From the IMG/VR virus record IMGVR_UViG_3300027759_006101, positions 62,001 to 126,000 of that record: 64,000 nucleotides of DNA; one strand, 5' to 3'. A program made the translations under genes and the position numbers. Under the pieces are notes generated by a model. The model did not search any database, was not told where the DNA came from, and saw only the letters and a program-made list of their open reading frames with translations. Of the stretch, positions 19,093 to 40,479 are shown piece after piece (position 1 is the stretch's first letter; every line of letters starts with the position of its first letter).

Positions 19093-19125
19093 AAAAAAAA
19101 GAGGGGATTTCTCCCCTCTTTTTTT
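19093..19125. terminator. Bidirectional intrinsic terminator
   Basis: A8-GAGGGGA-TTTC-TCCCCTC-T7 between the convergent 18599 gene and nrdA. Confidence 0.9.
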
Positions 19126-21568: not shown

Positions 21569-21570
21569 AA

Positions 21571-22527
21571 CTAAAAGTCCTCATCAAATGAAATCTGTTC
21601 TTGAGCTTCGCCAACACCACTCTTTACATAGTCAGCAACACGTTTCTCAAAGAAGTTAGTTTTATTCTGCAGTGCAATGTTAGCCATAAAGTCAAAAGGA
21701 TTCTCAGTATTATAGACCTTTCCTACACCTAAGTCCATAAGGAGGCGATCAGAAACATATTCTAGATACTGCTTCATCAATTCAGAATTCATACCAATCA
21801 AAGAAACAGGCAGTGCTTCAGTGATAAATTCTTTCTCAATTGTAAGAGCCGAATCAATAATTTCAAGAATACGCTCACGAGAAAGCTTGTTCTCAATATG
21901 ATGCTTGTAAAGATGAACTGCGAAGTCTGTATGCAATCCTTCATCACGAGAGATTAATTCGTTTGAGAAAGAAAGACCAGGCATCAAACCACGCTTCTTC
22001 AACCAGAAAATAGAGCAGAAGGAACCGGAAAAGAAAATTCCCTCAACAGCAGCAAAAGCGATAAGACGCTCTACAAAAGACTCTGAACCAATCCATTTGA
22101 GAGCCCATTCTGCTTTCTTTTGAACAGCAGGAACAGTATCAATTGCGTTAAAAAGATGGTTTTGCTCTTCTTTGTCTTTGATATATGTGTCAATAAGAAG
22201 GGAGTATGTCTCGGAGTGGATATTCTCCATCATAATTTGGAAGCCGTAGAAAAATTTAGCTTCTGTGTACTGTACTTCGGCAACAAAATTTTCTGCTAAG
22301 TTTTCATTGACAATTCCATCAGATGCAGCAAAGAATGCCAGAACGTGCTTAACAAAATGTTGCTCTCCTTCATTTAGCTTTTCCCAATCAGTTAGATCTT
22401 GAGCTAGATCAATTTCTTCAGCAGTCCAAAAAACCTGCTGAGCCTTTTTGTAATAATCCCAAATGTCGTGATGTTCGATTGGGAATAAAACGAACCGATT
22501 CTTGTTCTCTTGTAATATCTTTTCCAT
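21571..22527 (-). CDS. nrdB: Ribonucleotide reductase class Ia beta subunit
   Basis: [44 protein letters not shown]. Confidence 0.97.
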
Positions 22528-24459: not shown

Positions 24460-26250
24460 TTATGCTGATTTTATATCTTCTATTATCATCACCAGATTAT
24501 TATTACCAGACCAGTTATCAAGTTCAAGGGTGTAAACTACGTCAACTTTATCGCCTGGTTTGAATTCGTTACAAATATATCCACGTCTCCAAGCATTAGC
24601 AGAAACCCAAGTCTTTTCACCATTTGACAACTTAAGCTTAGCGTGTTTGCCTTGTGTAAGAGATTTAGCTTCAACAAGAGTCATATTCTTAGTGATGAAT
24701 ATTGGATTATGGTTTCCACTTCCAAAAGGAGATATTTTCGATAGATGAACATATGTTTTTATATTCAAATCACTAAAAGGCATACGAGCATCAATATCAA
24801 TAATTTTCTCACTACTTGGTTCACCTAATTTATCTTGAGCATAATTATTTAATGCTTTTCTCATTGCTGGAATATTGTCTATCGGAAGTTCAAAACCAGC
24901 AGCAAAAGCATGACCTCCACAAACAGTACTACCATCTGCTCTTTTCTTAAATAATTTCCAAGCTTCTTCTGACTTAAGAGCATCCAAGATATTAAAATCT
25001 CGAGTAGAACGACAAGAGCCTTTAGCATATCCATCTTTTTTAAATGAACAAACCAGAGTAGGCTTATTGTACATTTCTGCAATTTTGCCAGCAATAAGAC
25101 CAATCAATCCTGGGTGCCAATCTTCTTCACCCAAAATCAATATATGCTCTTTCTCTAAATCAAAATTTCTCTCAACAAAATCAATTGCCTGTTGAGTAGC
25201 TTTTTCTTGCTGTTCTTGGCGGCGAGTGTTAGCGTTGTTCATCTGCTTGGCTAGATTAGCTGCTGTAATGTCATCTTTTGAAAGCATCAAGCTCAAAGCA
25301 GTGCCAGCATCAGCAAGTCTACCTATGGCATTGATTCTTGGGCCAATTTGAAAGCCAATAGTCGTGGGAGTAACATCTTTTACTCCAGCTATACGAAGAA
25401 GTTCTTTGATTCCAGGTTTGTTACTGTTTGAAAGAATTGAACAGCCATAATTTACAATAACTCTGTTCTCATCAATCATTGGGGCAACGTCAGCAACAGT
25501 GCCTAATGCTGCAAATTCAATAAGTTCATCAACAAATTCATAAACATTAAGTTTACGATAACGGGCTAATCCGAGCATCAATTTAAAAGCAATTCCACAA
25601 CCAGCCAAATAATCAAATGGATAGCGCTCAAAACTATCTTTCTTATGTGACTTAAAATGCTCTCCTGGATAGAAAGGATCGTCTCTGTTAGGATTGACTA
25701 CTGCCATTGCTTCAGGCAACGATCCATCTTCACTAGGATGATGGTGATCAGTAATAATCAAGTCAAGATTTTTCTCTTTTGCATATGCCCCAGTTTCAAA
25801 AGCAACAATTCCACAGTCAACACTCATAAGAAGAGTTGCACCAGAAGCCAAAGCCTGATCGACAGAATGAATCTTGATATCGTATCCATCTTCCATCCTA
25901 TGAGGGACTTTGTATTCTATATTTGCTCCCATTTTTTCAAGAGCAGTAACAACAATAGCCGTAGAAGTAATTCCATCTACGTCATAATCTCCCCAGACAA
26001 ATATTTTCTCTCCAGAGTCAATTGCTTTACTTATGCGTTTTATAGCTATGTCAGCATCAGGCAAAGACATTGGGTTGTGAAGTTTTTTGATTTTCAAGTC
26101 AAGGAATTGCTCAGCTTTTTTCACTGAATCAATACCACGAGTCATCATAACTTGAGCAATTGACAATGGCACTTCAAGTTCACAGGCAAGTTCTTTGACT
26201 GAACTCATATCACAACTACGCATTTTCCAAACTGTTTCTATTTTATCCAT
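24460..26250 (-). CDS. recJ: Single-stranded DNA exonuclease RecJ
   Basis: GDYDVDGITS, RMEDGY, VDCG, ITDHH (DHH), GTVADV, GPRINAIGR, GSCRS, GGHAFAAG, PFGSGNHNP. Confidence 0.95.
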   Translation of the reverse strand: MDKIETVWKMRSCDMSSVKELACELEVPLSIAQVMMTRGIDSVKKAEQFLDLKIKKLHNPMSLPDADIAIKRISKAIDSGEKIFVWGDYDVDGITSTAIVVTALEKMGANIEYKVPHRMEDGYDIKIHSVDQALASGATLLMSVDCGIVAFETGAYAKEKNLDLIITDHHHPSEDGSLPEAMAVVNPNRDDPFYPGEHFKSHKKDSFERYPFDYLAGCGIAFKLMLGLARYRKLNVYEFVDELIEFAALGTVADVAPMIDENRVIVNYGCSILSNSNKPGIKELLRIAGVKDVTPTTIGFQIGPRINAIGRLADAGTALSLMLSKDDITAANLAKQMNNANTRRQEQQEKATQQAIDFVERNFDLEKEHILILGEEDWHPGLIGLIAGKIAEMYNKPTLVCSFKKDGYAKGSCRSTRDFNILDALKSEEAWKLFKKRADGSTVCGGHAFAAGFELPIDNIPAMRKALNNYAQDKLGEPSSEKIIDIDARMPFSDLNIKTYVHLSKISPFGSGNHNPIFITKNMTLVEAKSLTQGKHAKLKLSNGEKTWVSANAWRRGYICNEFKPGDKVDVVYTLELDNWSGNNNLVMIIEDIKSA

Positions 26251-27007
26251 TGTTTTTTCTTATGATTATCTTATCTCTGCCCAATTCAATAGTTTCTAAA
26301 ATTACTTCATCTAATTTTGATAATGAGTTGTTTCTAGCAAGATCGTCTGGGTCCATACCATCACACAAATAAATACTAATTACATTTATTTGAAGATTTT
26401 TTATTGTTTCAATTGCTTTCTCTGTAGCTATTCTTCCAGGGTAATCACCATCCATCAATAAACAGATATTATCGCAATACCTTGAGGCTAGTGCTACTTG
26501 ACATTCATGTAGAGATGTGCCACATATAGCAGCAACATTTTCTATGCCTTTATCATACAATGAATAGACATCAAAATATCCTTCGGTTAATATGATGTAA
26601 TTTTTTTCTCTAGCTTTGTCTTTTGCTACATCAAGAAAAAATAAATTTCTATTTTTTTGATAAGGTTCATTAATCCATTTTCCTCTTTTCCACTTATCAA
26701 TTCTATCTTGGCATTTAGCAGGTTCATTGCCAAAGCTATTCCACATTGCTTCGATAGTTATCTCTTCTAATTCTGGAATTTGTCTACCAGCTAAAGCAAT
26801 AATTTCTCCGTATACATTTTTTATAGGAACAATTAATCTACCTTTTAGATAAGGAAAACTATATCTAGAGAACGGAGGACAAAAAGCTACCAATTTGTTT
26901 TCAGTAATCTTTTCTGAAAGATGTCTAGTTTTAAAATATTCTTGAACAACTTTATTTTCATCATAGTTGCGCAAAAATTGATTGTAGTTCAATTCAAAGC
27001 TGTTCAT
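26243..27007 (-). CDS. dnaG: DnaG primase catalytic core (TOPRIM) without its zinc-binding domain
   Basis: RLIVPI...IIALAGR, TEGYFDV, AAICGTSL, LMDGDYPGRIA, GMDPDD. Start moved to the ATG at 27007. Confidence 0.85.
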   Translation of the reverse strand: MNSFELNYNQFLRNYDENKVVQEYFKTRHLSEKITENKLVAFCPPFSRYSFPYLKGRLIVPIKNVYGEIIALAGRQIPELEEITIEAMWNSFGNEPAKCQDRIDKWKRGKWINEPYQKNRNLFFLDVAKDKAREKNYIILTEGYFDVYSLYDKGIENVAAICGTSLHECQVALASRYCDNICLLMDGDYPGRIATEKAIETIKNLQINVISIYLCDGMDPDDLARNNSLSKLDEVILETIELGRDKIIIRKNNG

Positions 27008-27085
27008 CAAACAAATTGTATCATTAAAGGTAAGAATAATCATCTACAAAGAAATAAAGAATATCATTTTATTCAAGGTTTAAGA

Positions 27086-28456
27086 ATGGATAAATTTCAG
27101 AAACTTTCACAATTATCAAAAGAAATACAAATTTTAGAGACTGCAGGTAAAATTAAGGCAGCAGAAGTCCTTCATAAAAAATTCATCAAGGAATCACAAT
27201 ATATGATGCCACAAATGATGCCTATGATGATGATGCCTCAAATGATGCCTCAAATGATGCCTCAAATGATGCCTCAAATGATGATGGCAAGACCAACAGC
27301 TACTGTCGCTCCAGCTGCAGTAGCTAGACCAGTTGTCAATCAAACTCCAACTTCGGCACCTACACCAGTAGTTGCTCCAACTCCAGTACAGCAAGGGCAG
27401 ACAGGGCAAACTGGGCAAGTTACGCCTCCTGCTCAATCTACGACACCTCCTACTACACAGCCACCTGTAGTAAACCCACCTGTGACAACTCCTCCTCCTA
27501 TGCCTATTGATAAAGTTAAGAGACAATACGGTGATGGTCAATCAAAAAATGAAGAGTTGCAATATCTTGATAAAGAGAAAAGAAGACTAGAAGAATTAGG
27601 TTACAATGATCCCAAAAGCCCCTTTTATCAACAGTATCTGACTATTATTGGTATGATAAATAGAAATAAAGGCGGCTCAATAATCAAAAAGAGTGAAAAT
27701 ATGAACAAATTACAAAAGTTAGCACAATTAAATAAAGATATTGAATTATTAGAAAACGCTGGAAAGTTCAAAGCAGCTGAAATTTTACAAAAGAAATTAC
27801 TTAAAGAAGCACAAACTTTTGGTTATGGTGACACAAGTAGTAATTTTGATGCTCCTGGATATTCTGGACCAAGACAAGATATGCCTGACACATATGCAAA
27901 CGTAGAACTTAATGAACAAATAAGACAGAATTTAAGAAATAATAAACAACAAAATCCTTCAACTCAAACATCAAATCCTACTGAGTCTGATACAGCTAAT
28001 GTAAATGCTTTCAATGAAGGTATGTATGGTCAAATAAACCCTTTATCTTCAACTTCACAGCTTGATTACAAGACATTAATCAACCAAGCAAAAAATTACA
28101 TTGCGAGTGGTGATATGAATACAGCTGCTCAAATTAAGCAGCAAGCATTAAATTCTAGTATGACTCCTCAACAAAAAGCAGCGTTTCAACAGCAATACAA
28201 CACTATAGTTCAAAATTATTCCAATACAGCTAATAACCCTGAAGCATTTCAGTCGCAAGAAAATGCTCAGAATGCAATCGCTAAAGCTGCTCAATCACTG
28301 GGCATAAACACAAATGATCCACAAGCAATAAGAAAGAATGAATTAAAACTGAGAAGCAAATTACAGCAAATGGGATTACTAAAAGATAAAAATGTCCAAA
28401 GTTTACTAAGACAAATTTCTTTAAGAGGTTACTATATACAGAACCCTAATAAGTAA
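27086..28456 (+). CDS. Low-complexity orphan protein made of two tagged modules
   Basis: MDKFQKLSQLSKEIQILETAGKIKAAE (27086) is repeated as MNKLQKLAQLNKDIELLENAGKFKAAE (27701). M/P/Q/T-rich. Start moved to the ATG at 27086. Confidence 0.65.
   Translation: MDKFQKLSQLSKEIQILETAGKIKAAEVLHKKFIKESQYMMPQMMPMMMMPQMMPQMMPQMMPQMMMARPTATVAPAAVARPVVNQTPTSAPTPVVAPTPVQQGQTGQTGQVTPPAQSTTPPTTQPPVVNPPVTTPPPMPIDKVKRQYGDGQSKNEELQYLDKEKRRLEELGYNDPKSPFYQQYLTIIGMINRNKGGSIIKKSENMNKLQKLAQLNKDIELLENAGKFKAAEILQKKLLKEAQTFGYGDTSSNFDAPGYSGPRQDMPDTYANVELNEQIRQNLRNNKQQNPSTQTSNPTESDTANVNAFNEGMYGQINPLSSTSQLDYKTLINQAKNYIASGDMNTAAQIKQQALNSSMTPQQKAAFQQQYNTIVQNYSNTANNPEAFQSQENAQNAIAKAAQSLGINTNDPQAIRKNELKLRSKLQQMGLLKDKNVQSLLRQISLRGYYIQNPNK
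27203..27286 (+). repeat. 12-bp tandem repeat ATGATGCCTCAA encoding (MMPQ)n
   Basis: Four near-perfect consecutive units plus degenerate flanking units. Confidence 0.9.
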
Positions 28457-28457
28457 T

Positions 28458-28485
28458 AAAAAACCCCTCTTTCGAGGGGTTTTTT
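28458..28485. terminator. Bidirectional intrinsic terminator
   Basis: A6-CCCCTC-TTTC-GAGGGG-T6 between convergent genes. Confidence 0.9.
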
Positions 28486-28487
28486 AT

Positions 28488-29705
28488 TTAGTCTAACATT
28501 TCTTTTGCTGCAATATCAAAAGTAATTCCACCATCATCGTCATCGTCATCGATATCAATGTCGTCAGAAGATGGGCCTTTACTAATTGCTTCAACAAGAT
28601 CGGTAAGTGGTTTTCCAACTACTTTCAAGCGACCACAGATAAATTCAAATGCTGTAGTAGAATTATCATTACGAGTGCGCTTTTCAGGAGCTGGTTGAGT
28701 CATCAAAAGTTTACAGAATTCATATGCATCTTTAGATTCAATTACTTCTCCAGTGTCAATGTTCGTGTAAATAAACTTCTTACGAACCTCTTTGACGTAT
28801 TCAAATCCCTTAGCCTTAGCCTTATAGAGAAATTCATCAACAGGATTAGTAGTTTCATCATCAGTGAACATAATCTTGAATTCACCAGTGACACCAGGCT
28901 GACCATATCGAGTCTTCATAACAAGAACTTTGCTCTTGCCACCAATTACGACATCTTTACCTTCTGCATCTTTCTTGGTAACTTGTCCAGCAGCCCCATT
29001 AATCTTATTGATCCACAGACGCATATGAGTAAAGTAGTTCATAGCATTACCGCCAGAAGCAGTTTTTGCCATTGTCCCAGGCATTACTCCAGCACCCATA
29101 TAGAGCTGATTGATAAGTACAACAATAGTGCCCGATGCAGCAGTTTTAGCAGTTAAATCTTTGGTTAATCTTTTTACAAATCGTGCATGTAGTCCAATAG
29201 TCTGAACTTGCTCCATAGATTTTACTAATTCGTCATTTGGTATCATTGCTGAAATAGAGTCAACAATAATGACAGAATAGTCTCCTGTCTCAACCATAAA
29301 TTTGAGCAATTCACCATATTTTTCTGCGGATCCAACATTTTCAACAAGCAAAAGTTGAGCAGTGTTGACACCACAAGATAAAGCACGTAAAGGATAATAT
29401 GAATTCTCAACATTGAAGAAAGCACACTTCTTACCCAATTTTTGAGCTTCAGCAATTAACTTGTAACCAAGCCAAGTTTTGCCAGATTGTGATTCACCAC
29501 AAAATTCAATCAATGTACCAGCAGGAATTCCCATACCTGCACCAAGGATTGAATCAACTTCAAAAACACCTGTAGGAATAAATTCAATATTCTCTACATC
29601 ACCAGACTTAACACACTTCTCGTCAATTCCAAGTGCTTTAAGTTTTTGCTTTAGTAAACGCTCTTGATCTTTATCAATAGCTTCGTTTAGTTCTTTTCTA
29701 GCCAT
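28488..29705 (-). CDS. recA: RecA/UvsX recombinase
   Basis: IPTG...DSILG, GESQSGKT, IIVDSISAM, VVLINQ, SGGNAMNYF. Confidence 0.93.
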   Translation of the reverse strand: MARKELNEAIDKDQERLLKQKLKALGIDEKCVKSGDVENIEFIPTGVFEVDSILGAGMGIPAGTLIEFCGESQSGKTWLGYKLIAEAQKLGKKCAFFNVENSYYPLRALSCGVNTAQLLLVENVGSAEKYGELLKFMVETGDYSVIIVDSISAMIPNDELVKSMEQVQTIGLHARFVKRLTKDLTAKTAASGTIVVLINQLYMGAGVMPGTMAKTASGGNAMNYFTHMRLWINKINGAAGQVTKKDAEGKDVVIGGKSKVLVMKTRYGQPGVTGEFKIMFTDDETTNPVDEFLYKAKAKGFEYVKEVRKKFIYTNIDTGEVIESKDAYEFCKLLMTQPAPEKRTRNDNSTTAFEFICGRLKVVGKPLTDLVEAISKGPSSDDIDIDDDDDDGGITFDIAAKEMLD

Positions 29706-29716
29706 GATTTATCCTC

Positions 29717-29745
29717 AAAAAGGGATGGAATAAATCCATCCCTTT
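29717..29745. terminator. Hairpin between the ssb-like gene and recA, abutting the recA RBS
   Basis: AAAAGGGATGGA-N5-TCCATCCCTTTT. On the minus strand it is followed immediately by GAGGATAAATC-ATG. Confidence 0.7.
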
Positions 29746-29751
29746 TATCAA

Positions 29752-30735
29752 TTACTTAGTGCCCATCCAACCTAATGACAATTCATCATCAGAATCATCA
29801 TCATTTTCATCCTCATCAAAGACAGGTTTTGACACAGGCTTTTTCTTAGGCTCAGGAGCAGGAACTGACACTTCATCTTGATCTTCATCCACAGCAACAG
29901 GTGGTTTTACAGAGTAAGAAGATTTTACTGGAGCTTCAGGAACTTCAATATTTTCACCACGAGGAGGTGTAAATTTGAAAATCCTATCTAATGGATAACC
30001 ATAAGCAAAGAAATCTTCCCACTTTGGCATATTAGAATCATTCTTCCTATCTGCCTCGTAACCAAGACGCTCACGCTCTAAATCAGCAACTGAAGGTTCG
30101 CCTGCTTTACGTAAAAGCTCAACCATCTCATCAGTGATATAAGTTGGTTTACCCTCAAAATATAGAGTGTAATCAACAGAAAGAGGAGGCTCTTTGCCAG
30201 TAGCAGCAGCAGTAATCTTTACACAAGGAGAATTTCGGGTGCCATAATGACGGCCATCACCATCTTCATTTTCCTGATCTTCGTAATTCTGAATGGTTTG
30301 TTCAGCAACACGATTGAAGATGCTCTTACCTTTCTTGAGAATCTTAACTTCCCAGGTACCATCTTCTTGCTTTTCAAGAACATTCTGAGCATATTGAACA
30401 TTTCCAATATAACCCATTTTCTTCCAAGGACATTGAGAAACGTCATCGTTGCCAATTCGATTGAATGACTTGTTAAGATGAGCATCTGGAAATGGAATCT
30501 TCATAGTCTTTCCACGAAGTGAAGGATCATTGCCTGGGTTTGGAACATACACTTTATCAGTATATTCGATGAACATATAAGGGTCGCCAATGAGCTTTAG
30601 ACGGCGAACAACCTTAGGTGAATCTTTGACTGAAAGATTTACAAGAATATCTTGCAAACGAGGAAATGAGTTGCGAGGTGCAGAGCTGGCTGCTTGTTGT
30701 GCAACCATCTGAGATGCTGAAACACGTTTAATCAT
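29752..30735 (-). CDS. Phage single-stranded DNA-binding protein (gp32-like)
   Basis: CPW...QYAQNV...VKIL..GKSIF core and acidic C-terminal tail (DEDENDDDSDDE...W), next to recA. GGAG RBS supports the start at 30735. Confidence 0.55.
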   Translation of the reverse strand: MIKRVSASQMVAQQAASSAPRNSFPRLQDILVNLSVKDSPKVVRRLKLIGDPYMFIEYTDKVYVPNPGNDPSLRGKTMKIPFPDAHLNKSFNRIGNDDVSQCPWKKMGYIGNVQYAQNVLEKQEDGTWEVKILKKGKSIFNRVAEQTIQNYEDQENEDGDGRHYGTRNSPCVKITAAATGKEPPLSVDYTLYFEGKPTYITDEMVELLRKAGEPSVADLERERLGYEADRKNDSNMPKWEDFFAYGYPLDRIFKFTPPRGENIEVPEAPVKSSYSVKPPVAVDEDQDEVSVPAPEPKKKPVSKPVFDEDENDDDSDDELSLGWMGTK

Positions 30736-30819
30736 AATTTTCTCCAATTGGGCTCTTCCGTCCCACACTTATAAGTTTACTTTGAATTTTTGGCTTTAGC
30801 AATAAGATTTTCAAAAAAA

Positions 30820-31596
30820 TTAAATTCTTGAATTTCTAGTCCGAACTGTAGCCTGATTCCTATTTATAGGAGTTTTATCTTTCGAAAAAAGATTGGACAT
30901 ACCCTCTTGATTGAAGGAATGATTGATTCTTGAAAGCGCTTGATGCTCTCGTAAAATTCTGTCCATTTGACTTGCTGCAAATTCAATATTTTTTAGATAA
31001 TGCTCCAAATATGTTAGCAGCCTTTTGGAGTTTGTCATCGGAATGACAAATGGGTGAACAGTGAAAGCAGCATTTGCTTCTTTATCTTTCGCTGTTCCTG
31101 ATGATAATCTGATAGCCATTTCTCTAAGATTTTTATGTGCTTGAGAAATCATTTCATAATGTGCATAAACTACAGAAATTATTTCTGTCAATCTGTTTCT
31201 ATATTGAACTTGTAATGCATATGAAGCAGAAAATGATTCAAAATCATAGTCATCTTTAGTAGGAATTGCAATATCCCATTTTCTAACTTCATTTCTAATC
31301 TCAAGTTCATCATAAATTGGCAAAAGACTAATAGCATCTTGCCAATTTTGCACTTCTTTAGCAAAACTTTCTTCGCTAATACCTTTGAGACGACTAACTA
31401 AATCTTTGGAAAAGTTAGGATCTTGCCAGGAAATACTTTCTGGCATAGGAGCCCAATCTAAATTAGCTACAAGGATAGAATTTTCTTCATCATATCCCTC
31501 TTCGCCCTCAGACTTAATGACAAAATCTTCATTGGCGTAGTCTGCATAATCATCAAAATCTAAATCTTCCATAGCATCCTCAATCGAATAATTCAT
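30820..31596 (-). CDS. Hypothetical helical protein, possible UvsY-like recombination mediator
   Basis: Long amphipathic helices with the SGTAKDKEANA motif. Position next to the ssb-like gene and recA. Confidence 0.35.
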   Translation of the reverse strand: MNYSIEDAMEDLDFDDYADYANEDFVIKSEGEEGYDEENSILVANLDWAPMPESISWQDPNFSKDLVSRLKGISEESFAKEVQNWQDAISLLPIYDELEIRNEVRKWDIAIPTKDDYDFESFSASYALQVQYRNRLTEIISVVYAHYEMISQAHKNLREMAIRLSSGTAKDKEANAAFTVHPFVIPMTNSKRLLTYLEHYLKNIEFAASQMDRILREHQALSRINHSFNQEGMSNLFSKDKTPINRNQATVRTRNSRI

Positions 31597-34500
31597 CGCT
31601 CAAAAGGTGATTGGAAACTCTTGCAGTGTTTAATTGTTTCTTTTCACCACTTACAATACTATCATAGGACATTGAGTTTTTTTCAGCAAGTTTTCTTAAT
31701 CTTAAGGCTTGTTTTTCCTCACGAGATCTATCTAAAACTAACTGGTCCCAATGTAAAAGAAAATCTTCTACATACTCAAATTCATCAGCATCAGGCAAAC
31801 AGCACAAAGCATTAGCTTCAGCTAGTGCAGCAACAGTGCCTCTATTAGGTCTTGCTCTGTAACAAAAATCTTTAATGTCTTCATAAGGCTGGCTTTCAAC
31901 AATTTCAACTGATCTTGTTCCAACTCCTTTGATAGTCGATAATGGAAGTAAAATTTCACCTTTTTTATTGACACTTGTCTCAACACCAGACTCATTAATG
32001 TTTGGGTTTTTGATAGGTATTCTTTCCATATCGCATTCTCTTCTTAAGACTGCAACTTTATCTTCATCAAGCCTATCAATTTGTATACAAGCAGCAAGCC
32101 ACTCAGAAGGGTAATAATTACGCAAATAAGCTGTGTAGTATGATAAAAGTGCATATGAGCAAGCGTGTGACCTATTGAAAGCATATCCTCCGAATTTTGC
32201 CATCAATGCAAGAACTTCATCAATCACTTCTTTAGATATTCCGTTTTCAGCACTTTTAGAAGCAAATAAACTACAAACCTCATCAAAATCCTTGCCAGAT
32301 TTTTTAGAAATAGCTTTGCGTAATTTGTCTACTTGCTGCCAAGTAAAGCCTGCCATATCACGAGCCAAAAACATTGCTTGCTCCTGATACACCATAATTC
32401 CGTATGTCACTGAAAGATGTTTTTCAATAATGGGATGAGCATATTGAATTGTTTCAGGATGCCTTTTACCTTCAGCATACTGTGGAATATAATCCATAGG
32501 ACCTGGACGATAAAGTGCTGCAACAGCAATTAAATCTTCAACACTAGAGGCATTGACATCTCGTAAAGCTTGTTGCATTCCTTTAGAAGCAAATTGAAAA
32601 ACTGAAGCTGTTTTACCTTTCGCATAAATATTCTTGAAAATCTTCTGGTCATCAAGATTTATTTTTTTGAAATCGATTTCTTTATTGTGAAGTCGTTTGA
32701 TATGTTGCAAACACAAAGAAACTTGCTGGAATGCTGCTAAGCCCAAAAAGTCATATTTTACAAGGCCTACACGTTCTACATTCTTCATATCGTATGCAGA
32801 ACACAAGTTGCCTTTTGAGTTTTCGATAGGTGCGTGATAAGAAATTGGTTCTGAAGATACAAGCACTCCAGAAGCGTGGACACCAAAGTTAGAAATAGTT
32901 CCAACTAAATGAATTGCATTATCAATTTCAGGTTTCCATTTCCTGTAGTACATCTTGAAATCTTCATTTTCAATAAGAGTATCTTCAATAGTAGAGCCTG
33001 GTTTTTTAGAAATCAATGCAGAGATATTTAGTGCCTGGTTATGAAAATCATCAGGATATTTTGCCTGAAATCTTTCGGATGATTTTAGACAACCAACAAC
33101 AGCGGCTTTTGCACCATATCTTCCCCAAGTACCAATTTGCGCAACGTGGTCATCACCAAAACGGTCTTTGGTCCAATCAATAACTTCTGAACGCCTAGAA
33201 TCGTCAATATCTGTATCAACGTCAGGAAGAGCAGCAACTTTAGAGACAATTAAACCAGACTCAGGCTTTTCATCAGTTATTCCTAATATATGAGCGGTCC
33301 AAAGTTGTGATTCATTCGTTTGGGTTTTTATGCCTAATTTAGCTAAACCATAAATATACGAAGACAAGCCTTGATTCTCTAATACCCACAATTCTTTTTC
33401 GATATCAGGTTCATACTTTTGATATTGCGGAAAATGCTCAAGCCACTTTTGAGTGTACTTCTTGAGTTTTTTAGTGTATGGAATTTGTTCTTGATCACCA
33501 TATTCAGAAAGAAATTGTGAATGTGGGAACTCAGAAATATCAATCTTGTATTGAGTGCCTCTTCCAGGATTCAAAAAACGTTCAAACATCAAGTTCCAGC
33601 GAACAGGATCTACATTGCAAACTTCAAGACAAAAGTTCACTAAAGAACCTACCCCAGAACCACGAATTCCAAAGTGAATATTCTTTTGTTTTAAGAATTC
33701 AACCATTTCTCTTTGAATTAAAAAATAGTCTGTAACACCCATATACCAAATTTGTTTAAGTTCATAATTCAAACGTTCAAGATATGTTCTATTAAATAGA
33801 CCGGCAGCTTTCAAACCATTCAAGCACAAGTAAGCAAGATACGCCTCATTATCTTTATGATAAGGAAGCTTTGAATTCTTAAATGCAGCAAATTCTGGAT
33901 TAGTGACTGGTACTTTTGCCGATGGTAATAAGTGAGGTACATCAAGCTTGAAAAAATCTTCCACCATCTCTGATATAAGTACAGAATTCTTCAAAGCTTC
34001 AGGAACTTGAGCACCAAATATTTTATGCATTTCATCATAAGACTTCAGATAAAATTGATGGCTGCCGTAAGCTTCTTTCTTACCGCCACCTTTTCTGTCA
34101 GTCCTAGAGTCACGTTGATCCCTCATTTGAATTAAGACATCGTGAATAGTCCAGTCTAATTTATCTAAATAATGAACATCATTTGAAGCGACCAATGGCA
34201 CATCAAACTTTTTAGCAACATTAAGTAAATGCTGCATATTGTGTTTTTGTTCTTCTATTCCATGATATTGAAGTTCAACAAAATATCTATTGCCAAAAAC
34301 ATTCTTGAAACGTGACGCAATTTTATTTGACTGTTCTAAATCTTCCTTGATTATAGATTGATTAAGTTCAGATGCTAAGCAGCCAGATAAAGCAATCACA
34401 CCTTCACTATGCTTTTCGATGCATCCCCAGTCTACACGAGGAGAGTAATGAAAAGCATCAGGATCATTACCAATAGCAGATAACGCTAATAAATTTTTAT

Positions 34501-34819
34501 ATCCTGTTTCATTTTGAGCAAGAAGGGTTAGGTGATTGAGTTTCTTTCGACGACCATCTTCTGTCTTGCTTTTATCAAAACGATCTTCACAAGTGTAAAC
34601 CTCAATTCCAACAATTGGTTTGATAGTTTCGTAGTCACATTTAACACGGCAAGCTTCAACAAATTCTACTGCTCCACCAAGTTTTCCGTGGTCAGTAATT
34701 GCAGTAGCTCTAAAGCCCATTTCTCGTGCTTTAAGGGCGTATTTAGCAGGAGTAGGAAGTGCGTCTTGTATTGAAAAATGTGTGTGTGCGTGAAGATGCA
34801 CAAAATCTTTATTACTCAT
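31580..34819 (-). CDS. dnaE: DNA polymerase III alpha subunit
   Basis: PHP domain (HLHAHTHFS, TDHG, SNDVHY), FERFLNP, LPDVDTD, HASGV, KYDFLGL, YQEQ, YAFNRSHA, HhH IKGVG. Start moved to MSNKDF (34819). Confidence 0.95.
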   Translation of the reverse strand: MSNKDFVHLHAHTHFSIQDALPTPAKYALKAREMGFRATAITDHGKLGGAVEFVEACRVKCDYETIKPIVGIEVYTCEDRFDKSKTEDGRRKKLNHLTLLAQNETGYKNLLALSAIGNDPDAFHYSPRVDWGCIEKHSEGVIALSGCLASELNQSIIKEDLEQSNKIASRFKNVFGNRYFVELQYHGIEEQKHNMQHLLNVAKKFDVPLVASNDVHYLDKLDWTIHDVLIQMRDQRDSRTDRKGGGKKEAYGSHQFYLKSYDEMHKIFGAQVPEALKNSVLISEMVEDFFKLDVPHLLPSAKVPVTNPEFAAFKNSKLPYHKDNEAYLAYLCLNGLKAAGLFNRTYLERLNYELKQIWYMGVTDYFLIQREMVEFLKQKNIHFGIRGSGVGSLVNFCLEVCNVDPVRWNLMFERFLNPGRGTQYKIDISEFPHSQFLSEYGDQEQIPYTKKLKKYTQKWLEHFPQYQKYEPDIEKELWVLENQGLSSYIYGLAKLGIKTQTNESQLWTAHILGITDEKPESGLIVSKVAALPDVDTDIDDSRRSEVIDWTKDRFGDDHVAQIGTWGRYGAKAAVVGCLKSSERFQAKYPDDFHNQALNISALISKKPGSTIEDTLIENEDFKMYYRKWKPEIDNAIHLVGTISNFGVHASGVLVSSEPISYHAPIENSKGNLCSAYDMKNVERVGLVKYDFLGLAAFQQVSLCLQHIKRLHNKEIDFKKINLDDQKIFKNIYAKGKTASVFQFASKGMQQALRDVNASSVEDLIAVAALYRPGPMDYIPQYAEGKRHPETIQYAHPIIEKHLSVTYGIMVYQEQAMFLARDMAGFTWQQVDKLRKAISKKSGKDFDEVCSLFASKSAENGISKEVIDEVLALMAKFGGYAFNRSHACSYALLSYYTAYLRNYYPSEWLAACIQIDRLDEDKVAVLRRECDMERIPIKNPNINESGVETSVNKKGEILLPLSTIKGVGTRSVEIVESQPYEDIKDFCYRARPNRGTVAALAEANALCCLPDADEFEYVEDFLLHWDQLVLDRSREEKQALRLRKLAEKNSMSYDSIVSGEKKQLNTARVSNHLLSDELFD

Positions 34820-34860
34820 AACAATCCATTCTATAAGCGCCGTCAAAGACAGTCATTCAC

Positions 34861-35679
34861 TTATACGTAAGAGGACATCGTTTTATTATTATCAGATGTC
34901 AAACATCCATTTTTTGTATCATACTTCTTCTTGCTTAAATTGGCAAGAATACACTTATCAATTTCCCTCAGACATTTAGGCCTATACTTAAAAGGCAATC
35001 TATCCAGTCCATACAAATGGTAAGAATTGGGTATTTGCTTTATCAGTAAAAAACCATCTTCTTTTTTTATAATGCGAAGATTATACGGATGATTGTCATT
35101 AATAATTATTTTTGTAAGATTTTCTCTTTTTTGATCAAAAGACAATATTTCATAATTTTTCTTAGTCTTTACTAAGTTGCAATTATTCAAAGCATTCCTG
35201 ATTGAAGATTCACTAATATATAAAAATTTTTCTAATGAACTAATACTAATGGGAGAATCATTTTCATATCTAGCGGCAAAAATTGAAATGTAAAGCTCTT
35301 TGACATTTTTGGTACTAAAACCATCAATTACCGACAATGGGATTGCTACAGGTTTAGACCTAGTTACATTCGGATTTAGTCTGGATACTATTTTAGAAAT
35401 AGAAAAAAGACAAATCTTTTTATTTCTGATTTGTCCGTGAGGTTTTGTCCAATATAAATCTATTCCTAGTTTAAGTTTTTCATAAACAAACTTTGACTTA
35501 TAATTGAAAAGTTTTGTGCAGATATTAAGTAATTCCTTAACTTCAATTATGCCAGAACCATTGATATCAACTAATTTTGCAACATTCCAAATAGTAAAAA
35601 TATCGCACTCATTCTGTTTGATAATTTCTGGCAATAACTCAGGATTTACTATAAATGTTTTCTTAATCATCTTCTGCAA
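34861..35679 (-). CDS. Hypothetical protein, possibly winged-helix DNA-binding
   Basis: 272 aa, basic. SPISISSLEKFLYISESSIRNAL is HTH-like. Confidence 0.45.
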   Translation of the reverse strand: MQKMIKKTFIVNPELLPEIIKQNECDIFTIWNVAKLVDINGSGIIEVKELLNICTKLFNYKSKFVYEKLKLGIDLYWTKPHGQIRNKKICLFSISKIVSRLNPNVTRSKPVAIPLSVIDGFSTKNVKELYISIFAARYENDSPISISSLEKFLYISESSIRNALNNCNLVKTKKNYEILSFDQKRENLTKIIINDNHPYNLRIIKKEDGFLLIKQIPNSYHLYGLDRLPFKYRPKCLREIDKCILANLSKKKYDTKNGCLTSDNNKTMSSYV

Positions 35680-35890
35680 ATTTTTCTAATTCTCGATTTA
35701 TACCAGAAGTTAATATATATTTATAAATTGATTCTTCAGTTAAATCTGGGAATGCTGTTATCATTATTTGCCTTAATAGTAACATTTTTTTAGCAGCAGA
35801 ACCAGTCAAAATTAAATTGACCGCAACTTCATCAGAAATATCTTTTAGTGATTCTTTAATTTGATTAAGATTGAAATTTGGTTTTAGCAT
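35663..35890 (-). CDS. Hypothetical protein
   Basis: 75-aa ORF overlapping both neighbours. Confidence 0.5.
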   Translation of the reverse strand: MLKPNFNLNQIKESLKDISDEVAVNLILTGSAAKKMLLLRQIMITAFPDLTEESIYKYILTSGINRELEKFAEDD

Positions 35891-36522
35891 AATTTTAACT
35901 CTTTCGCTTTTTCAGATGACAAATTATTAAACTTCTTCCATTCATTACGAATTTTAGTATAATTTTTTTCAATGATTAGTTTATCCATCATTTTATAATA
36001 ATCTTCTGTCCAAGATAATATATCAGAATTAAAATTAAACTTTCTTTCAAACAGTTTTATCTTTTCAGCCATCAAAACTAAAAAATTACCTTCATCCATA
36101 CCACCAGGAAAATTATCAGAATTTTCGTTTCTTACTAAATAAGTTTTTATGGAATCTGAAAGTTCATTGACTAAAGACTTGAGCTCTAAATCAGAAGTTT
36201 CTACATCTAATTTAGCAAAGACAGAAATCTTTTGTATTGCCTCAATGAAGTTAAGATTCTCAACTTCTTGAACTAAACTTATTAAGTCACCCTTAGCATT
36301 ACATCCAAAGCAGTTGTAATTGTTGTCTTTTATGTTAACACCAAAAGATGGGCTTGAATCTTCGTGATTTGGCAAAGGGCAATTAGTATTAGCCCAGTCA
36401 CTACCATTTGAAAAGCTAAATTCACTCCCATAACAATCTTCCATAAACTCAACAATATTTGTGTTTTTGTTGAGTTTATCAATAAAAGAGCGAGTAATTT
36501 TTTCTTTCAAGACAGCATCCAA
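35884..36522 (-). CDS. Stand-alone CHC2 zinc-binding domain of primase plus helical C-terminus
   Basis: CPLPNHEDSSPSF....YNCFGC...GDLISLVQEVENLNFIEAIQKI. Confidence 0.85.
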   Translation of the reverse strand: MDAVLKEKITRSFIDKLNKNTNIVEFMEDCYGSEFSFSNGSDWANTNCPLPNHEDSSPSFGVNIKDNNYNCFGCNAKGDLISLVQEVENLNFIEAIQKISVFAKLDVETSDLELKSLVNELSDSIKTYLVRNENSDNFPGGMDEGNFLVLMAEKIKLFERKFNFNSDILSWTEDYYKMMDKLIIEKNYTKIRNEWKKFNNLSSEKAKELKLC

Positions 36523-38078
36523 TCTGAAACATCTAATTCTTCATCATTAGACATATCTATCTTCGCAATTTCTTCTTCGTCTATTTCTTTATTGTCAAAC
36601 ATTTCTTCAGAGTTGAAAGCATTAGTTTTGTCTTTGATTGGTGTTTTATCACTTGTTTCCTTGACTATTTTATTGCCTGTAGCTACTCCGTGAAGTCCCA
36701 TAATCTGCTGTTGTTCTTCTTCGTCAATTTCTTCAACTTTGTTGAATATACTATTGAGTCTGACAGGAAATGGATGAAACCAAGCATCACGCATTTTTAC
36801 AGGATGTAATACACAATAGCCTAAATCACGATTAGGCTCCATAGCGATAGCATAAGTACAAAGGTGCATCAAATTTTGACCACCTGAAGCTGCTGCTTGA
36901 TCATAACTCATAAACTTATTTGCGTCTTTAGATTTTCTAGAGTCACGAATAGTTTCTCTGTTAATCTGCTGTGCTGTAATTACTGGAATGTTATATCTTT
37001 TAGCAAGCAAGAATAATCCCTGAACAGCTTTTGATTGATTTTCCCAATCTTTTGAGCCATTAGGTGCATTTCTTACAGTCATATTTCCAATATAGTCAAC
37101 CACTAAAAGATCTGGTTTACCTTTTGTAGCAATAAGTTCTCGAATTTTTGAATCAATATAATCTGGAGTAGGATCTTCCATATTGACATCATATTCAAAA
37201 TATGGTCCTTGCTCTTGTTTTTTCAAGCCTTCTATAATTGTTTTAAGCTCGTCTTTTGATAAATTTGTACCTTTGATTTGATCATAAGGAATTTCAAAAC
37301 TCAATGCTATATGGCGTAACATACAAAGCCAAGCATTCATTTCAAAGGACATATATAGAACTTTTTTCCCACAAATCTTATTAGCGTGTAAAGCTGAATT
37401 AAGCATCATCACGGATTTACCTCCAGATGATGGCGCAAGAAAAACTACAATCTGTCCAGGCATCCATCCAAAAGTTTTATTGTCTATATTGGAAATGCCA
37501 CAATTGATACCCTTAAATAATTCAGGACTGTTAAGTCTCTTATTGTATTCATTTTCAAAGAATGTACTAGATTCAGTAACGTCAAAACTTTGCTTTTCGT
37601 TTACATAATCTAACAATTCATTATTGATCGATGCTAAACTGTTTTCGATAACATTAATAGCTTCTTTGATAGTATTGGTTTTAAGTTTACTAGCACTCTC
37701 TTGCAGTGAGCTTGAAAATATTTTTAAAGCTTGTCTATTTTTAAGTTGACTAGTAATTTCATAAAAATTATTTTCGTCTACATCGCAATCTTCTAGCAAT
37801 GACCACAAAGAAAAAAACTTCTTCCTATGACCAGACGGAATTTTCTTAGAATCAAGTGTGGACTCTAAGACTAAATCAGTAAATAAAGAATTGCTTACTT
37901 TCCAATAATCCATAATAAATGTGAATAATTGCTTAGAGTAAGAAATTATGTCACCATCTGCTTGAAATTCAAAATGCTCATCAGTTATATTTTTTGAAAG
38001 CAAACTTTCCATACACTTGAAGCTTTTAGTAATAGAGGCTAAGCAGTAAATTTCTAAATTTTTATTATCTAATTTCAT
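36507..38078 (-). CDS. dnaB: Replicative helicase DnaB-like
   Basis: GISNID..TFG, APSSGGKS Walker A, LYMSFEM, LLVVDYI, ITAQQINR. Confidence 0.88.
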   Translation of the reverse strand: MKLDNKNLEIYCLASITKSFKCMESLLSKNITDEHFEFQADGDIISYSKQLFTFIMDYWKVSNSLFTDLVLESTLDSKKIPSGHRKKFFSLWSLLEDCDVDENNFYEITSQLKNRQALKIFSSSLQESASKLKTNTIKEAINVIENSLASINNELLDYVNEKQSFDVTESSTFFENEYNKRLNSPELFKGINCGISNIDNKTFGWMPGQIVVFLAPSSGGKSVMMLNSALHANKICGKKVLYMSFEMNAWLCMLRHIALSFEIPYDQIKGTNLSKDELKTIIEGLKKQEQGPYFEYDVNMEDPTPDYIDSKIRELIATKGKPDLLVVDYIGNMTVRNAPNGSKDWENQSKAVQGLFLLAKRYNIPVITAQQINRETIRDSRKSKDANKFMSYDQAAASGGQNLMHLCTYAIAMEPNRDLGYCVLHPVKMRDAWFHPFPVRLNSIFNKVEEIDEEEQQQIMGLHGVATGNKIVKETSDKTPIKDKTNAFNSEEMFDNKEIDEEEIAKIDMSNDEELDVSDWMLS

Positions 38079-38875
38079 CTTATATGCGGCAATCTAATTG
38101 ACAAACAATTGGTGACTAAAGAATTCCATCCAGAGCCAGAACTAATATTTGAAGTGCTTCCTAATACCATTAAAAAAATGGGTTTGCCAGAATTGAGTCT
38201 TGATTTGGCAAGTCTGTCCAAATTTTGAACAAAGTGAGGATGCGTGTAGCTATATTGTTCGATGCCATCTATAACAATAAAATCTAAGTTTTTGAATTCA
38301 TCATTGATAATTTCAAATTGTTCTTTTTTATCAAAGTCAGTAATGATGCTTATAAGGTCTGACCACTCGTAATATTTAGCAGTAAGATTTTTTCTAATTG
38401 CAGCCTGGACTAAGACAGAAGCAATAAATGTTTTTCCACTGCCACTTTTTCCATCAAAAAGTATAGAATGCAGCTTTGAAACAAGATTGCCAGAGTGTCT
38501 AATTTTGGGACATTCGTTATCTGCAATTAACTGCAATTTCTTTTCGTAAAACTTAAGAATTGTAAAAACTCTTTCACTTACTTGTTCTTCAGCTCCCAAA
38601 TCTTTACCAGCAGAATCAGTTCTCGTGTTCCAATCATCTAAAGTTTTGCCTATGTATAGCAATGGAACATTAGATTTACGATAGACGCTTTTGTAAAATC
38701 TTTCTTTTTCACAAGAACATAATACAGCTTTATCATTCTCAGATTTTGTATATCCTGTGTAGTTACAAAGAACGCAGCCTTTGCCTTCACTCATACGACG
38801 TAGTTTGTCTTTTTCGTTTAAGTTTTTAGTTGTGCGTTCTAAACCAAGTATTTCATCAAATGACACATCAGACAC
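38075..38875 (-). CDS. dnaC: DnaC/DnaI-like helicase loader ATPase
   Basis: N-terminal C..C...G....CSC zinc motif, GKSGSGKTF, FIVIDGI. Adjacent to dnaB. Confidence 0.7.
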   Translation of the reverse strand: MSDVSFDEILGLERTTKNLNEKDKLRRMSEGKGCVLCNYTGYTKSENDKAVLCSCEKERFYKSVYRKSNVPLLYIGKTLDDWNTRTDSAGKDLGAEEQVSERVFTILKFYEKKLQLIADNECPKIRHSGNLVSKLHSILFDGKSGSGKTFIASVLVQAAIRKNLTAKYYEWSDLISIITDFDKKEQFEIINDEFKNLDFIVIDGIEQYSYTHPHFVQNLDRLAKSRLNSGKPIFLMVLGSTSNISSGSGWNSLVTNCLSIRLPHIR

Positions 38876-40479
38876 TATAAATCATCCTCATCATTATTAT
38901 ATCTTCTTAAATCAGAATTACCATTACTAGCATTTCTAGCTCTTTCAGAAGCCCAAGCTCTCAGCAATTCAATTTCTTCTTTCATAAGTTTGGATATAGG
39001 TACAGATTCTTTCAAGGACTGAAGTATATCATAGGTTGTAATGTCTCTTTTATTATCACTAAAAGCTTCATACAATGCACTTTCTATAGCAGCTTCGATT
39101 TCAGCTCCAGTGTATGATTCGGATACATCTGACAATTTATCTAAGTCATAATGTTTTGGATTTCTAGCTCTTTTTTGAAGATGTATTTCAAAAATTATTC
39201 TTCTCTCAGAAAACTTAGGCAAATCAACAAAAAATATTTCATCAAATCTGCCTTTTCTTAAGAGCTCTGGAGGAAGTGTTGTTACATCATTGGCAGTAGC
39301 AACAACAAATACAGGCTCTTTTCTGTCTTGCATCCAAGTAAGCCAAGAGCCTAAAACTCTACTAGTAGTTCCGCCATCAGTTGAAGAAGATGCTCTACTT
39401 CCTGACATACCTTTATCAATTTCATCGCACCACAATATGCAGGGAGCAACACTTTCGGCAACCTTAAACACCTGACGCATATTTTGTTCAGAGCTTCCTA
39501 CAAGCCCTGAAAAAACTTTGCCCATATCCAGTCTTAGCAATGGGAAATTCCAAAATGAAGAAATTCCCTTAGCAAATAGAGACTTTCCAGCTCCTTGAAT
39601 TCCTACAAGTAAAATGCCCTTAGGATTACTAGGTAAGCCATATTCGACTGCTTCTCTTGAAAAAGCATCTTTACGCTTACTTAACCATATTTTCAAGCCT
39701 TCAAGACCACCAATACTATCCATATTGATACTCTCATCAATCCAGTCTAGAAGACCTGATTTCTTGATGATGTCTCTTTTTTGTTGAGATATAGTTTCAG
39801 GCAATAGAGAGGAATGCTTAATCATACAATATGTGCAAACTTGTTCACACTCAGACAAAGTAAGACCACGAAATGAATTTATAATATTGTCCTTCTCTTC
39901 ATTACTATAAGTTGTTTTGAATTTAGCAGACAAATCAGCTCGTTTACTTGCTCTTTCAAGCAAATTATTGATTTTTGTATTTATCTCAAACTTGGTTGGC
40001 AATGGGAAATCAATTAATGGCACAATCTTTTCAAGGTCATTAGGTAATTCTAAGACTGACGAAAGAATAATGATTGCTTTATTTTGGACAGTGAATTCAT
40101 TCGTAAGATTTTTGAGATGTCTTATGATTTTAATTTCTACTTGTCCCTTATAATTTCCAGACCCAAAAAATTTATTAAAGTCTTTAAGAACTAAAATACA
40201 AAATTTGTTTTTAGGAACAATTAAGTTTTGAAACCAAGAAAGAACTTCAGATTGGTCTAATTGTTTTTCAACTTCTTTTGTAGGCAAAAATTCAGGAAAA
40301 GTAGATTCTAATCCTGAAACAACGTCCCACTTTATAAGATCCCACGAAGTATCAGCTTTAGAACACATTTGCTCTAAAGCTGACAATACTCTGTTTTCCT
40401 CTTGAGAAACGATATAAATAACGGTTCTTTTGGACCTTACAAGAAGTTCAATTTCTTCTAACGTACTTATGCTATCCAT
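38875..40479 (-). CDS. Ycf46-like AAA+ ATPase
   Basis: IGGLEGLK.WL, GILLVGIQGAGKS, PLLRLDMG, LVGSSE, WCDEIDK, ATAN...LPPELLRKGRFDE. Confidence 0.85.
   Translation of the reverse strand: MDSISTLEEIELLVRSKRTVIYIVSQEENRVLSALEQMCSKADTSWDLIKWDVVSGLESTFPEFLPTKEVEKQLDQSEVLSWFQNLIVPKNKFCILVLKDFNKFFGSGNYKGQVEIKIIRHLKNLTNEFTVQNKAIIILSSVLELPNDLEKIVPLIDFPLPTKFEINTKINNLLERASKRADLSAKFKTTYSNEEKDNIINSFRGLTLSECEQVCTYCMIKHSSLLPETISQQKRDIIKKSGLLDWIDESINMDSIGGLEGLKIWLSKRKDAFSREAVEYGLPSNPKGILLVGIQGAGKSLFAKGISSFWNFPLLRLDMGKVFSGLVGSSEQNMRQVFKVAESVAPCILWCDEIDKGMSGSRASSSTDGGTTSRVLGSWLTWMQDRKEPVFVVATANDVTTLPPELLRKGRFDEIFFVDLPKFSERRIIFEIHLQKRARNPKHYDLDKLSDVSESYTGAEIEAAIESALYEAFSDNKRDITTYDILQSLKESVPISKLMKEEIELLRAWASERARNASNGNSDLRRYNNDEDDL

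Follow-up and report, generated by a model that had tools for sequence, protein, structure and literature searches.

A DnaG-type primase in two pieces: a large phage probably combines a minimal catalytic core with a separately encoded zinc-finger subunit

The stretch of DNA analyzed here (the window, 64,000 nucleotides) comprises bases 62001–126000 of IMGVR_UViG_3300027759_006101, a linear virus record of 358,269 bp with a CheckV completeness of 89% and approximately 32% G+C. The source is a huge uncultivated phage from a large-phage clade with a bacterial-type replisome. Two open reading frames (ORFs) in its minus-strand replication block encode the parts of a DnaG-type primase, and approximately 9 kb (8.9 kb) separate them, so the gene is not the one-chain DnaG with consecutive zinc, polymerase and helicase-binding domains. 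Our structural models suggest that the phage probably makes a heterodimeric primase, in which a 254-residue core is joined by a 208-residue subunit that carries the zinc domain and docks on TOPRIM through a three-helix bundle. The features on which this reading rests are listed below in window coordinates; pLDDT is the predicted local distance difference test of the AlphaFold2 (AF2) models.

26243..27007, minus strand: catalytic subunit, a 254-residue DnaG-type RNA-polymerase core (N-terminal subdomain and TOPRIM).
26687..26776, minus strand: family-specific two-helix insertion, core residues 78–107, between the AGRQ and KWINEP motifs.
35884..36510, minus strand: zinc-finger/adaptor subunit of 208 residues (212 residues from the TTG at 36522).
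36208..36507, minus strand: CHC2 zinc-binding domain, residues 6–105, ligands C48, H53, C71 and C74.
36094..36195, minus strand: long helix 110–131 and a loop with the invariant P139-G140 (AF2 pLDDT approximately 69–79).
35899..36093, minus strand: C-terminal three-helix bundle, residues 144–208 (pLDDT 87–96), the predicted TOPRIM docking module.
28488..34846, minus strand: the gene block (DnaE, two genes, RecA-like) that separates the two primase genes, in the same order in all relatives.

The core ORF spans 26243–27043 on the minus strand, with an upstream ATG at 27043. We placed the start at the ATG at 27007, as in the original prediction made from the bare sequence, because approximately 80 homologous clusters are 251–254 residues long. 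The stop codon overlaps the start of recJ by 8 nucleotides. The protein matches Pfam Toprim_2 with an expectation value (E) of 1.7e-15 and DNAG_N weakly, and a comparison with the sequences in the Protein Data Bank (PDB) gave DnaG matches at 1.6e-23. The AF2 model (pLDDT 94) resembles bacterial DnaG RNA-polymerase domains (2au3, 4edg, 1dde) with template modeling (TM) scores of 0.65–0.72. In a Foldseek search, 2au3 was matched at E 2.6e-17 and TM 0.71, and all top matches were DnaG polymerase domains; T7 gp4, Twinkle and T4 gp61 came after them. The family profile aligns to residues 136–225 and 234–365 of E. coli DnaG, which places the beginning of the core at the beginning of the polymerase domain, as had been predicted, and its end just after TOPRIM.

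The invariant residues of the core include R75, W111, N113, E142-G-Y-x-D146, D186-x-D188 and D219-P-D221. Across 24 sequences, the TOPRIM acidic residues E142, D186/D188 and D219/D221 do not vary, and the primase N-terminal-subdomain motifs G74-R75 and K110-W-I-N-E-P115 are conserved in the family. By its acidic residues, N-terminal motifs and fold, the protein is a DnaG-type primase RNA-polymerase domain. It is minimal but, judging by its motifs, appears catalytically intact.

An insertion of about 30 residues after AGR had been noted originally. It is real and measures approximately 26 residues where E. coli DnaG has about nine, as seen from the gap in the alignment with the Aquifex and E. 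coli DnaG proteins. In the AF2 model it forms two helices (78–92 and 96–107), which lie outside the predicted subunit interface described below. A standalone TOPRIM core with 25% identity (P0117, L021:950–1747) is without this insertion and lies directly after recA on a 5-kb contig; since it still adjoins recA, the adjacency of RecA and core appears to be older than the insertion. At its other end, the core stops 56–80 residues short of the ends of the solved RNA-polymerase-domain constructs. We take this stretch to be the C-terminal helical subdomain of the DnaG polymerase domain. The helicase-binding domain PF08278 has no match anywhere in the record. The core is thus a protein without the zinc domain, the helical subdomain and the helicase-binding domain; the loss of the last had been predicted, and that of the helical subdomain comes in addition.

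The ORF of the zinc protein extends from 35884 to 36522 on the minus strand and overlaps dnaB by 16 nucleotides. Translation more likely begins at the TTG at 36510, so that the start codon and the dnaB stop codon overlap as TTGA. We favor this position because the homologues and the Atlas record start there. The subunit has 35 homologous clusters with lengths of approximately 207–210 residues; residue numbers given for it follow the 212-residue numbering. Residues 10–109 match Pfam Zn_ribbon_DnaG at 1.2e-17, and the profile of the protein maps to residues 4–97 of E. coli DnaG. The four zinc ligands are invariant in the family, and the model of the domain matches 1d0q with a Z score of 13.4 and a root-mean-square deviation of 3.2 over 102 residues (2au3, Z 12.8). 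With these C-H-C-C ligands and this fold, the domain is a CHC2 zinc ribbon (PF01807). The model of the whole protein has a pLDDT of 86. The expectation of a separate CHC2 ORF overlapping dnaB was therefore correct, and the ribbon is followed by approximately 100 helical residues (helices 110–131, 144–161, 166–184 and 188–208). Helix 110–131 and the loop after it would tether the zinc domain to the bundle.

Both proteins match the phage primase family phrog_6444 (577 positions) in parts that do not overlap, the zinc protein at positions 4–104 and the core at positions 201–365. Since the zinc half corresponds approximately to DnaG residues 4–97 and the core to approximately 136–365, the break falls in the flexible linker between the zinc and polymerase domains of an ordinary DnaG. 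A Pfam search of the genome and searches of the six-frame ORFs with our own profiles showed that the record has a single zinc domain and a single DnaG-type TOPRIM core. No PrimPol or archaeo-eukaryotic primase was found in it. A further primase gene, with which the zinc protein might have paired instead, had been considered in the original prediction, and the record yielded none.

The two halves co-occur in all 13 genomes that cover both positions. In the 12 further contigs with this coverage (L003, L004, L005, L007, L022 and L024 to L030), which bear out the conservation of the split, the order of genes is the same throughout: DnaC-like, DnaB, zinc protein, two small genes, DnaE, two genes, RecA and core, usually with RecJ. 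The arrangement is kept even where the zinc subunit is only approximately 29–33% identical (L024, L025). Another contig (L013, core 40% identical) begins at DnaE and retains the downstream order. The zinc gene either overlaps dnaB by 4–16 nucleotides or follows it with a 3-nucleotide gap in all relatives, and from this spacing it appears translationally coupled to dnaB in every one of them. For the closest pair of core genes, the nonsynonymous divergence (dN) is 0.053 and the synonymous divergence (dS) is 0.75. For the zinc subunit, C-terminal half included, dN is 0.14 and dS is saturated. These rates indicate purifying selection on both halves. The single copy of each half, together with their conservation as separate genes in 12 contigs, makes the split more than chance.

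It is extremely improbable that, in the proteins themselves, the split is only apparent and reflects decay, mis-assembly or halves rejoined by a split intein or a frameshift. Inteins do occur in the zinc-protein family (four relatives, described below), and the halves of the primase of mycobacteriophage D29 are directly adjacent and could in principle be joined. However, the halves here are separated by 9 kb with seven or more conserved genes, and they are intact and under selection in 13 genomes. The C-terminus of the zinc protein is all-helical and not a β-rich Hint fold, and the polymerase domain begins at the very start of the core, which carries no C-intein. The intein of the relatives, for its part, is contiguous and sits inside the zinc domain, away from the break. 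Split-intein trans-splicing of the kind seen in cyanobacterial DnaE was also considered and rejected, as the N-intein/C-intein pair that defines it is absent. Because the halves are intact, conserved and selected, with no Hint fold at the break, we set aside decay, misassembly and trans-splicing.

The complex was predicted from three separately aligned chains: the core, residues 1–190 of DnaB and, as the partner to be scored, the zinc protein. Three runs gave interface scores (ipSAE, interaction prediction score from aligned errors) of 0.81, 0.82 and 0.82, and the best of the three controls gave 0.01. In calibration, 58 of 80 solved complexes and 2 of 110 mismatched pairs attained the mark for this score; the counts apply only approximately here, with our own alignments and three chains. 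The runs share at least 46% of contacts, and the pLDDT of the partner is at least 76. Bundle residues 144–184 are predicted to face core residues 65–66, 117, 120, 133, 168–179 and 205–207, so that the core side lies mainly in the TOPRIM domain. With the core exchanged and the DnaB domain left in place, the score was down to 0.01, which points to the core, and not to the helicase domain, as the predicted partner of the bundle. No confident contact of the bundle or the zinc domain with the N-terminal domain of DnaB was predicted, although only a monomer was offered and a site formed by a dimer would escape, so that this result does not argue against binding. The model thus supports binding of the zinc subunit to the core but does not show it. 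The helical domain had originally been given a role on the helicase side as part of a two-subunit primase. The two-subunit primase is supported by the single copies, the co-occurrence and the ipSAE of 0.82, whereas in the model the helices hold the core and make no contact with the DnaB monomer. On whether the zinc subunit remains at the helicase, these results speak neither for nor against; an association with it is plausible.

Three of the four bundle residues that are invariant in the deep family (E159, Y176 and D180) are inside the predicted interface. Y176 is predicted to touch R176 of the core, which is invariant and non-catalytic, and E159 is predicted to touch R133 of the core. The residues at core position 133 and bundle position 159 are R/E in eight genomes, I/L and M/I in two, and R/S and R/L in two. 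In the two genomes with a hydrophobic residue at 133, position 159 is thus hydrophobic too. The pairing is suggestive only (one-sided Fisher test, approximately 0.09), and the genomes are not independent. We give little weight to these residue-level hints, which are statistically weak.

Several points weigh against a heterodimer. The interface is only marginally better conserved than the remaining residues (permutation p value 0.06 on the bundle side and 0.38 on the core side), and covariation by mutual information across 12 paired genomes was not significant. Binding rests on a single structure prediction, and the high score might echo the packing of the C-terminal helical subdomain in solved DnaG structures. 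The prediction contains no helicase contact, which leaves recruitment to the fork unexplained. Finally, the record is approximately 89% complete, and a further primase may lie in the absent part.

A different reading dispenses with a stable heterodimer and places the two subunits independently on the DnaB hexamer, where alone the zinc domain would act in trans, with the bundle as a helicase-binding module. This would be similar to the subunits of E. coli DnaG or to the two-part helicase binding of T4 gp61. The arrangement agrees with the coupling to dnaB that the zinc gene shows in every relative, and two precedents speak for it: the zinc and polymerase domains of T4 primase bind separate dimers of helicase N-terminal domains (PMC10359460), and action in trans between separate primases is documented (PMC2978363). 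The bundle nevertheless binds the core in the three-chain model, and the score is 0.01 when the core is replaced, although only a monomeric DnaB domain was offered. It also shows no similarity to the helicase-binding domains of DnaG. We therefore regard independent binding to the helicase as unlikely, though it is the strongest competitor of the heterodimer.

Where the bundle comes from was addressed by sequence, profile and structure. It has no Pfam match. Its profile, compared with the sequences in the PDB, gave only unrelated proteins at E 0.13 or worse, and a structure search (VIA-align wide search and a second look) returned only generic helical bundles with Z of 7.6 or lower. The best score among the ESM Atlas features was 0.89, which is below the usable mark. 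For the idea that the bundle is a displaced C-terminal helical subdomain or helicase-binding domain of DnaG, none of the three approaches gave a usable signal. By hmmsearch and hhalign, the C-terminal regions of E. coli DnaG and of three phage primases matched it at E values of 0.2 or worse. Matches to the helicase-binding regions of E. coli DnaG and a H. bizzozeronii prophage primase (E 0.65–0.8) are at chance level. The sequence and fold comparisons thus do not place the bundle in the fold of the DnaG helicase-binding domain or the DnaB N-terminal domain.

A length-independent search of 1.84 billion representative proteins with the bundle profile, at E 1e-3 or better, returned 44 representative proteins. 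Most of these are proteins of 187–256 residues that end in the bundle, or pieces of such proteins; four have approximately 600 residues, and one match (695 residues, E 1.5e-4) is spurious. Zn_ribbon_DnaG was found in nine of the nine true family members scanned, and TOPRIM in none of the ten proteins scanned. The remaining matches are too short to hold a TOPRIM core. The bundle is thus a previously unnamed domain family that occurs only behind standalone primase zinc domains. We do not claim a new fold. Across the deep family, E159, Y176, D180 and W195 are invariant.

The four divergent relatives of approximately 600 residues (P0134, P0137, P0142 and P0146) are zinc and bundle proteins interrupted by an intein of approximately 390 residues. 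It has LAGLIDADG-like blocks, ends in HN and lies after the C-F-G of the second zinc knuckle, so that the cysteine that is the fourth zinc ligand is the +1 residue of the intein. Inteins tend to occupy conserved sites of important genes. One of the intein-bearing proteins (P0142, L025:6229–8073) is encoded in the usual place after dnaB. The zinc gene of the window itself has no intein.

In the mechanism that we propose, an ancestral primase gene would have been split at the flexible linker that joins the zinc and polymerase domains. The bundle would dock on TOPRIM at core helix 168–179 and neighboring residues, and this non-covalent tether would replace the covalent linker that was lost. Carried on a helix and loop of approximately 35 residues, the zinc domain could then extend to the active site of the core to which it is bound. 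There it would recognize the start site on the template and hold the 5′ end of the primer, as in DnaG primases. The model implies that the two subunits would bind physically and synthesize primers jointly. An effect on primer length is suggested as well, because the length of the T4 linker has been proposed to act as a measuring tape (PMC10359460). The pair would most likely reach DnaB much as T4 primase reaches its helicase, through the zinc domain, the core or both; we favor this route because the zinc subunit appears translationally coupled to dnaB. As a more general statement, it seems an even bet that a broad clade of phages natively uses a heterodimeric DnaG in which the bundle fastens the zinc domain to TOPRIM and not to the N-terminus of the polymerase domain.

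The position of the core gene raises the question of whether the two genes are related in function at all. The core lies between recA and recJ and overlaps recJ, and its adjacency to RecA is found even in the 25%-identical relative. It could prime alone or serve as a repair or nuclease protein with RecA and RecJ, and the zinc protein could be an accessory of the helicase or the origin. Isolated T7 polymerase domains can make dinucleotides, and standalone zinc-domain families exist among the PHROGs (phrog_360, phrog_18097, phrog_11992). However, no DnaG primase motif is missing from the core, the primase N-terminal subdomain is present in it, the halves co-occur strictly in the 13 genomes, and the predicted interface is of high confidence with clean controls. 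Furthermore, the DnaG primases that have been studied need the zinc domain for template-specific initiation (PMC2978363, PMC10359460). Two unrelated genes are thus a quite improbable explanation, and the heterodimeric primase remains our preferred one.

The replication block occupies the 23–41 kb region of the window. Its other genes are listed in order of transcription.

38875–40479, minus strand: AAA+ ATPase, the first gene of the block.
38075..38875, minus strand: DnaC/IstB-like helicase loader (Pfam IstB_IS21 3.6e-6; phrog_50 1.8e-16), with a 4-nucleotide overlap with dnaB.
36507..38078, minus strand: DnaB-like replicative helicase of 523 residues (Pfam DnaB_C 5e-24; phrog_19 1.8e-46).
Between the zinc gene and DnaE, minus strand: two genes without assigned function.
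31580–34846, minus strand: DnaE-type Pol III α (Pfam families on orthologues).
30820–31596 and 29752–30768, minus strand: two genes without assigned function (from the ORF list).
28488–29705, minus strand: RecA-like gene (Pfam families on orthologues).
24460–26250, minus strand: RecJ, directly after the TOPRIM core.

dnaB is directly upstream of the zinc-subunit gene, and the two genes overlap. The C-terminal approximately 85 residues of DnaB (36507–36770, minus strand) form a long acidic tail of low complexity with an aromatic residue near the tip. The tail may be a counterpart of the acidic C-terminal tail of T7 gp4, which contacts the polymerase. The genes at 29752–30768 and 30820–31596 are conserved between DnaE and RecA and have no Pfam or PHROG match. 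The product of the former has a strongly acidic C-terminal tail like those of single-strand-binding proteins. Both may be unrecognized parts of the replisome. Past RecJ, a class I ribonucleotide reductase is encoded, with large and small subunits at 19124–22527 (minus strand).

The block has a single plus-strand gene (26921–28456, probable start near 27086). Its product is rich in M, P and Q and of low complexity, contains a motif of approximately 38 residues twice, and matches no family. A terminator-like hairpin with a T-run (28466–28479) comes after its stop codon. Homologous inserts in the gap between recA and the core are present in L003, L005, L007 and L008, and absent from L004, L013 and L022. 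Elsewhere in the window we noted a PcfJ-like protein (10846–12630, plus strand), an SMC/AAA_23-type ATPase (43254–44381, minus strand), and ORFs of 750–1000 residues without a Pfam match at 43–2334, 12637–15492, 15485–18511 and 46725–49271. No transfer RNA genes were found in the window, a scan for promoters and terminators gave counts at chance level, and the reading frames called for no alternative genetic code. No close cultured relatives of the phage were found; the best tblastn identities in the phage collection are 27–35%.

If the heterodimer is real, it matters for how DnaG primases are understood. Whether the zinc domain acts in cis or in trans, how the start site is chosen and how primer length is measured are debated, and much of the evidence was obtained with engineered proteins, either truncated or chimeric. 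Here the tether, which is believed to govern how start sites are chosen and how long primers become, would have a different geometry, and the phage would offer the first natural separable system for studying the cooperation between zinc and polymerase domains. A natural two-protein primase would permit tests with native parts, such as mutation of the tether, variation of the stoichiometry and swaps of the zinc subunit. For annotation, a "primase" of approximately 250 residues and a distant "CHC2 zinc finger protein" of approximately 208 residues in large phages would be read as one enzyme. The bundle defines a new domain family with 44 representative clusters.

The phage proteins share the CHC2 ribbon, the polymerase fold and the catalytic motifs with bacterial DnaG (E. 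coli, Aquifex and S. aureus; 1dd9, 2au3, 4edg, 1d0q). Also in common are a DnaB-type helicase and a DnaC-like loader, which in the phage are encoded nearby. Unlike the one-chain enzyme, the phage primase is divided between two genes, its core has the 26-residue insertion and is without the helical subdomain and the helicase-binding domain, and for the three-helix bundle attached to its zinc domain we detected no counterpart in DnaG.

The primase T4 gp61 has zinc and polymerase domains, is without a bacterial-type helicase-binding domain, and matches both phage models. It is a single chain with a covalent linker of 18 residues, whereas the link in the phage is the predicted non-covalent contact between bundle and TOPRIM. 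In T4, each of the two domains contacts the helicase through a motif of its own, and primer length has been proposed to depend on how long the linker is (PMC10359460).

A split DnaG-type primase has its nearest natural precedent in the gp58/gp57 pair of mycobacteriophage D29 (Cluster A, L012:5270–6119), in which the zinc and TOPRIM ORFs are separate and both annotated as DNA primase. Gp58 (129 residues) matches Zn_ribbon_DnaG at 4.3e-14, and gp57 (152 residues) matches Toprim_2 at 4.2e-7 and gave no match to the primase N-terminal subdomain. The D29 genes are adjacent, 1 nucleotide apart, and much smaller than the pair described here with its 9-kb separation. Gp58 has only approximately 50 residues past the zinc ribbon, which is too short for the bundle. 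In the literature searched, we found no biochemical study of gp58 and gp57 as one enzyme. A natural two-subunit DnaG primase is not described in the literature covered, which excludes subscription journals and includes the survey PMC4889955.

Zinc domains of bacterial primases act in trans on the polymerase domain of another molecule (PMC2978363, citing Corn et al. 2005). In the DnaG proteins of E. coli and S. aureus and in T7 gp4, such action takes place between full-length subunits or in engineered chimeras, whereas the separation seen in these phages is native and conserved. A split primase itself has a precedent in D29. In the literature covered, we found no account of a DnaG with its halves far apart as a trait of a whole clade and with a dedicated adaptor domain.

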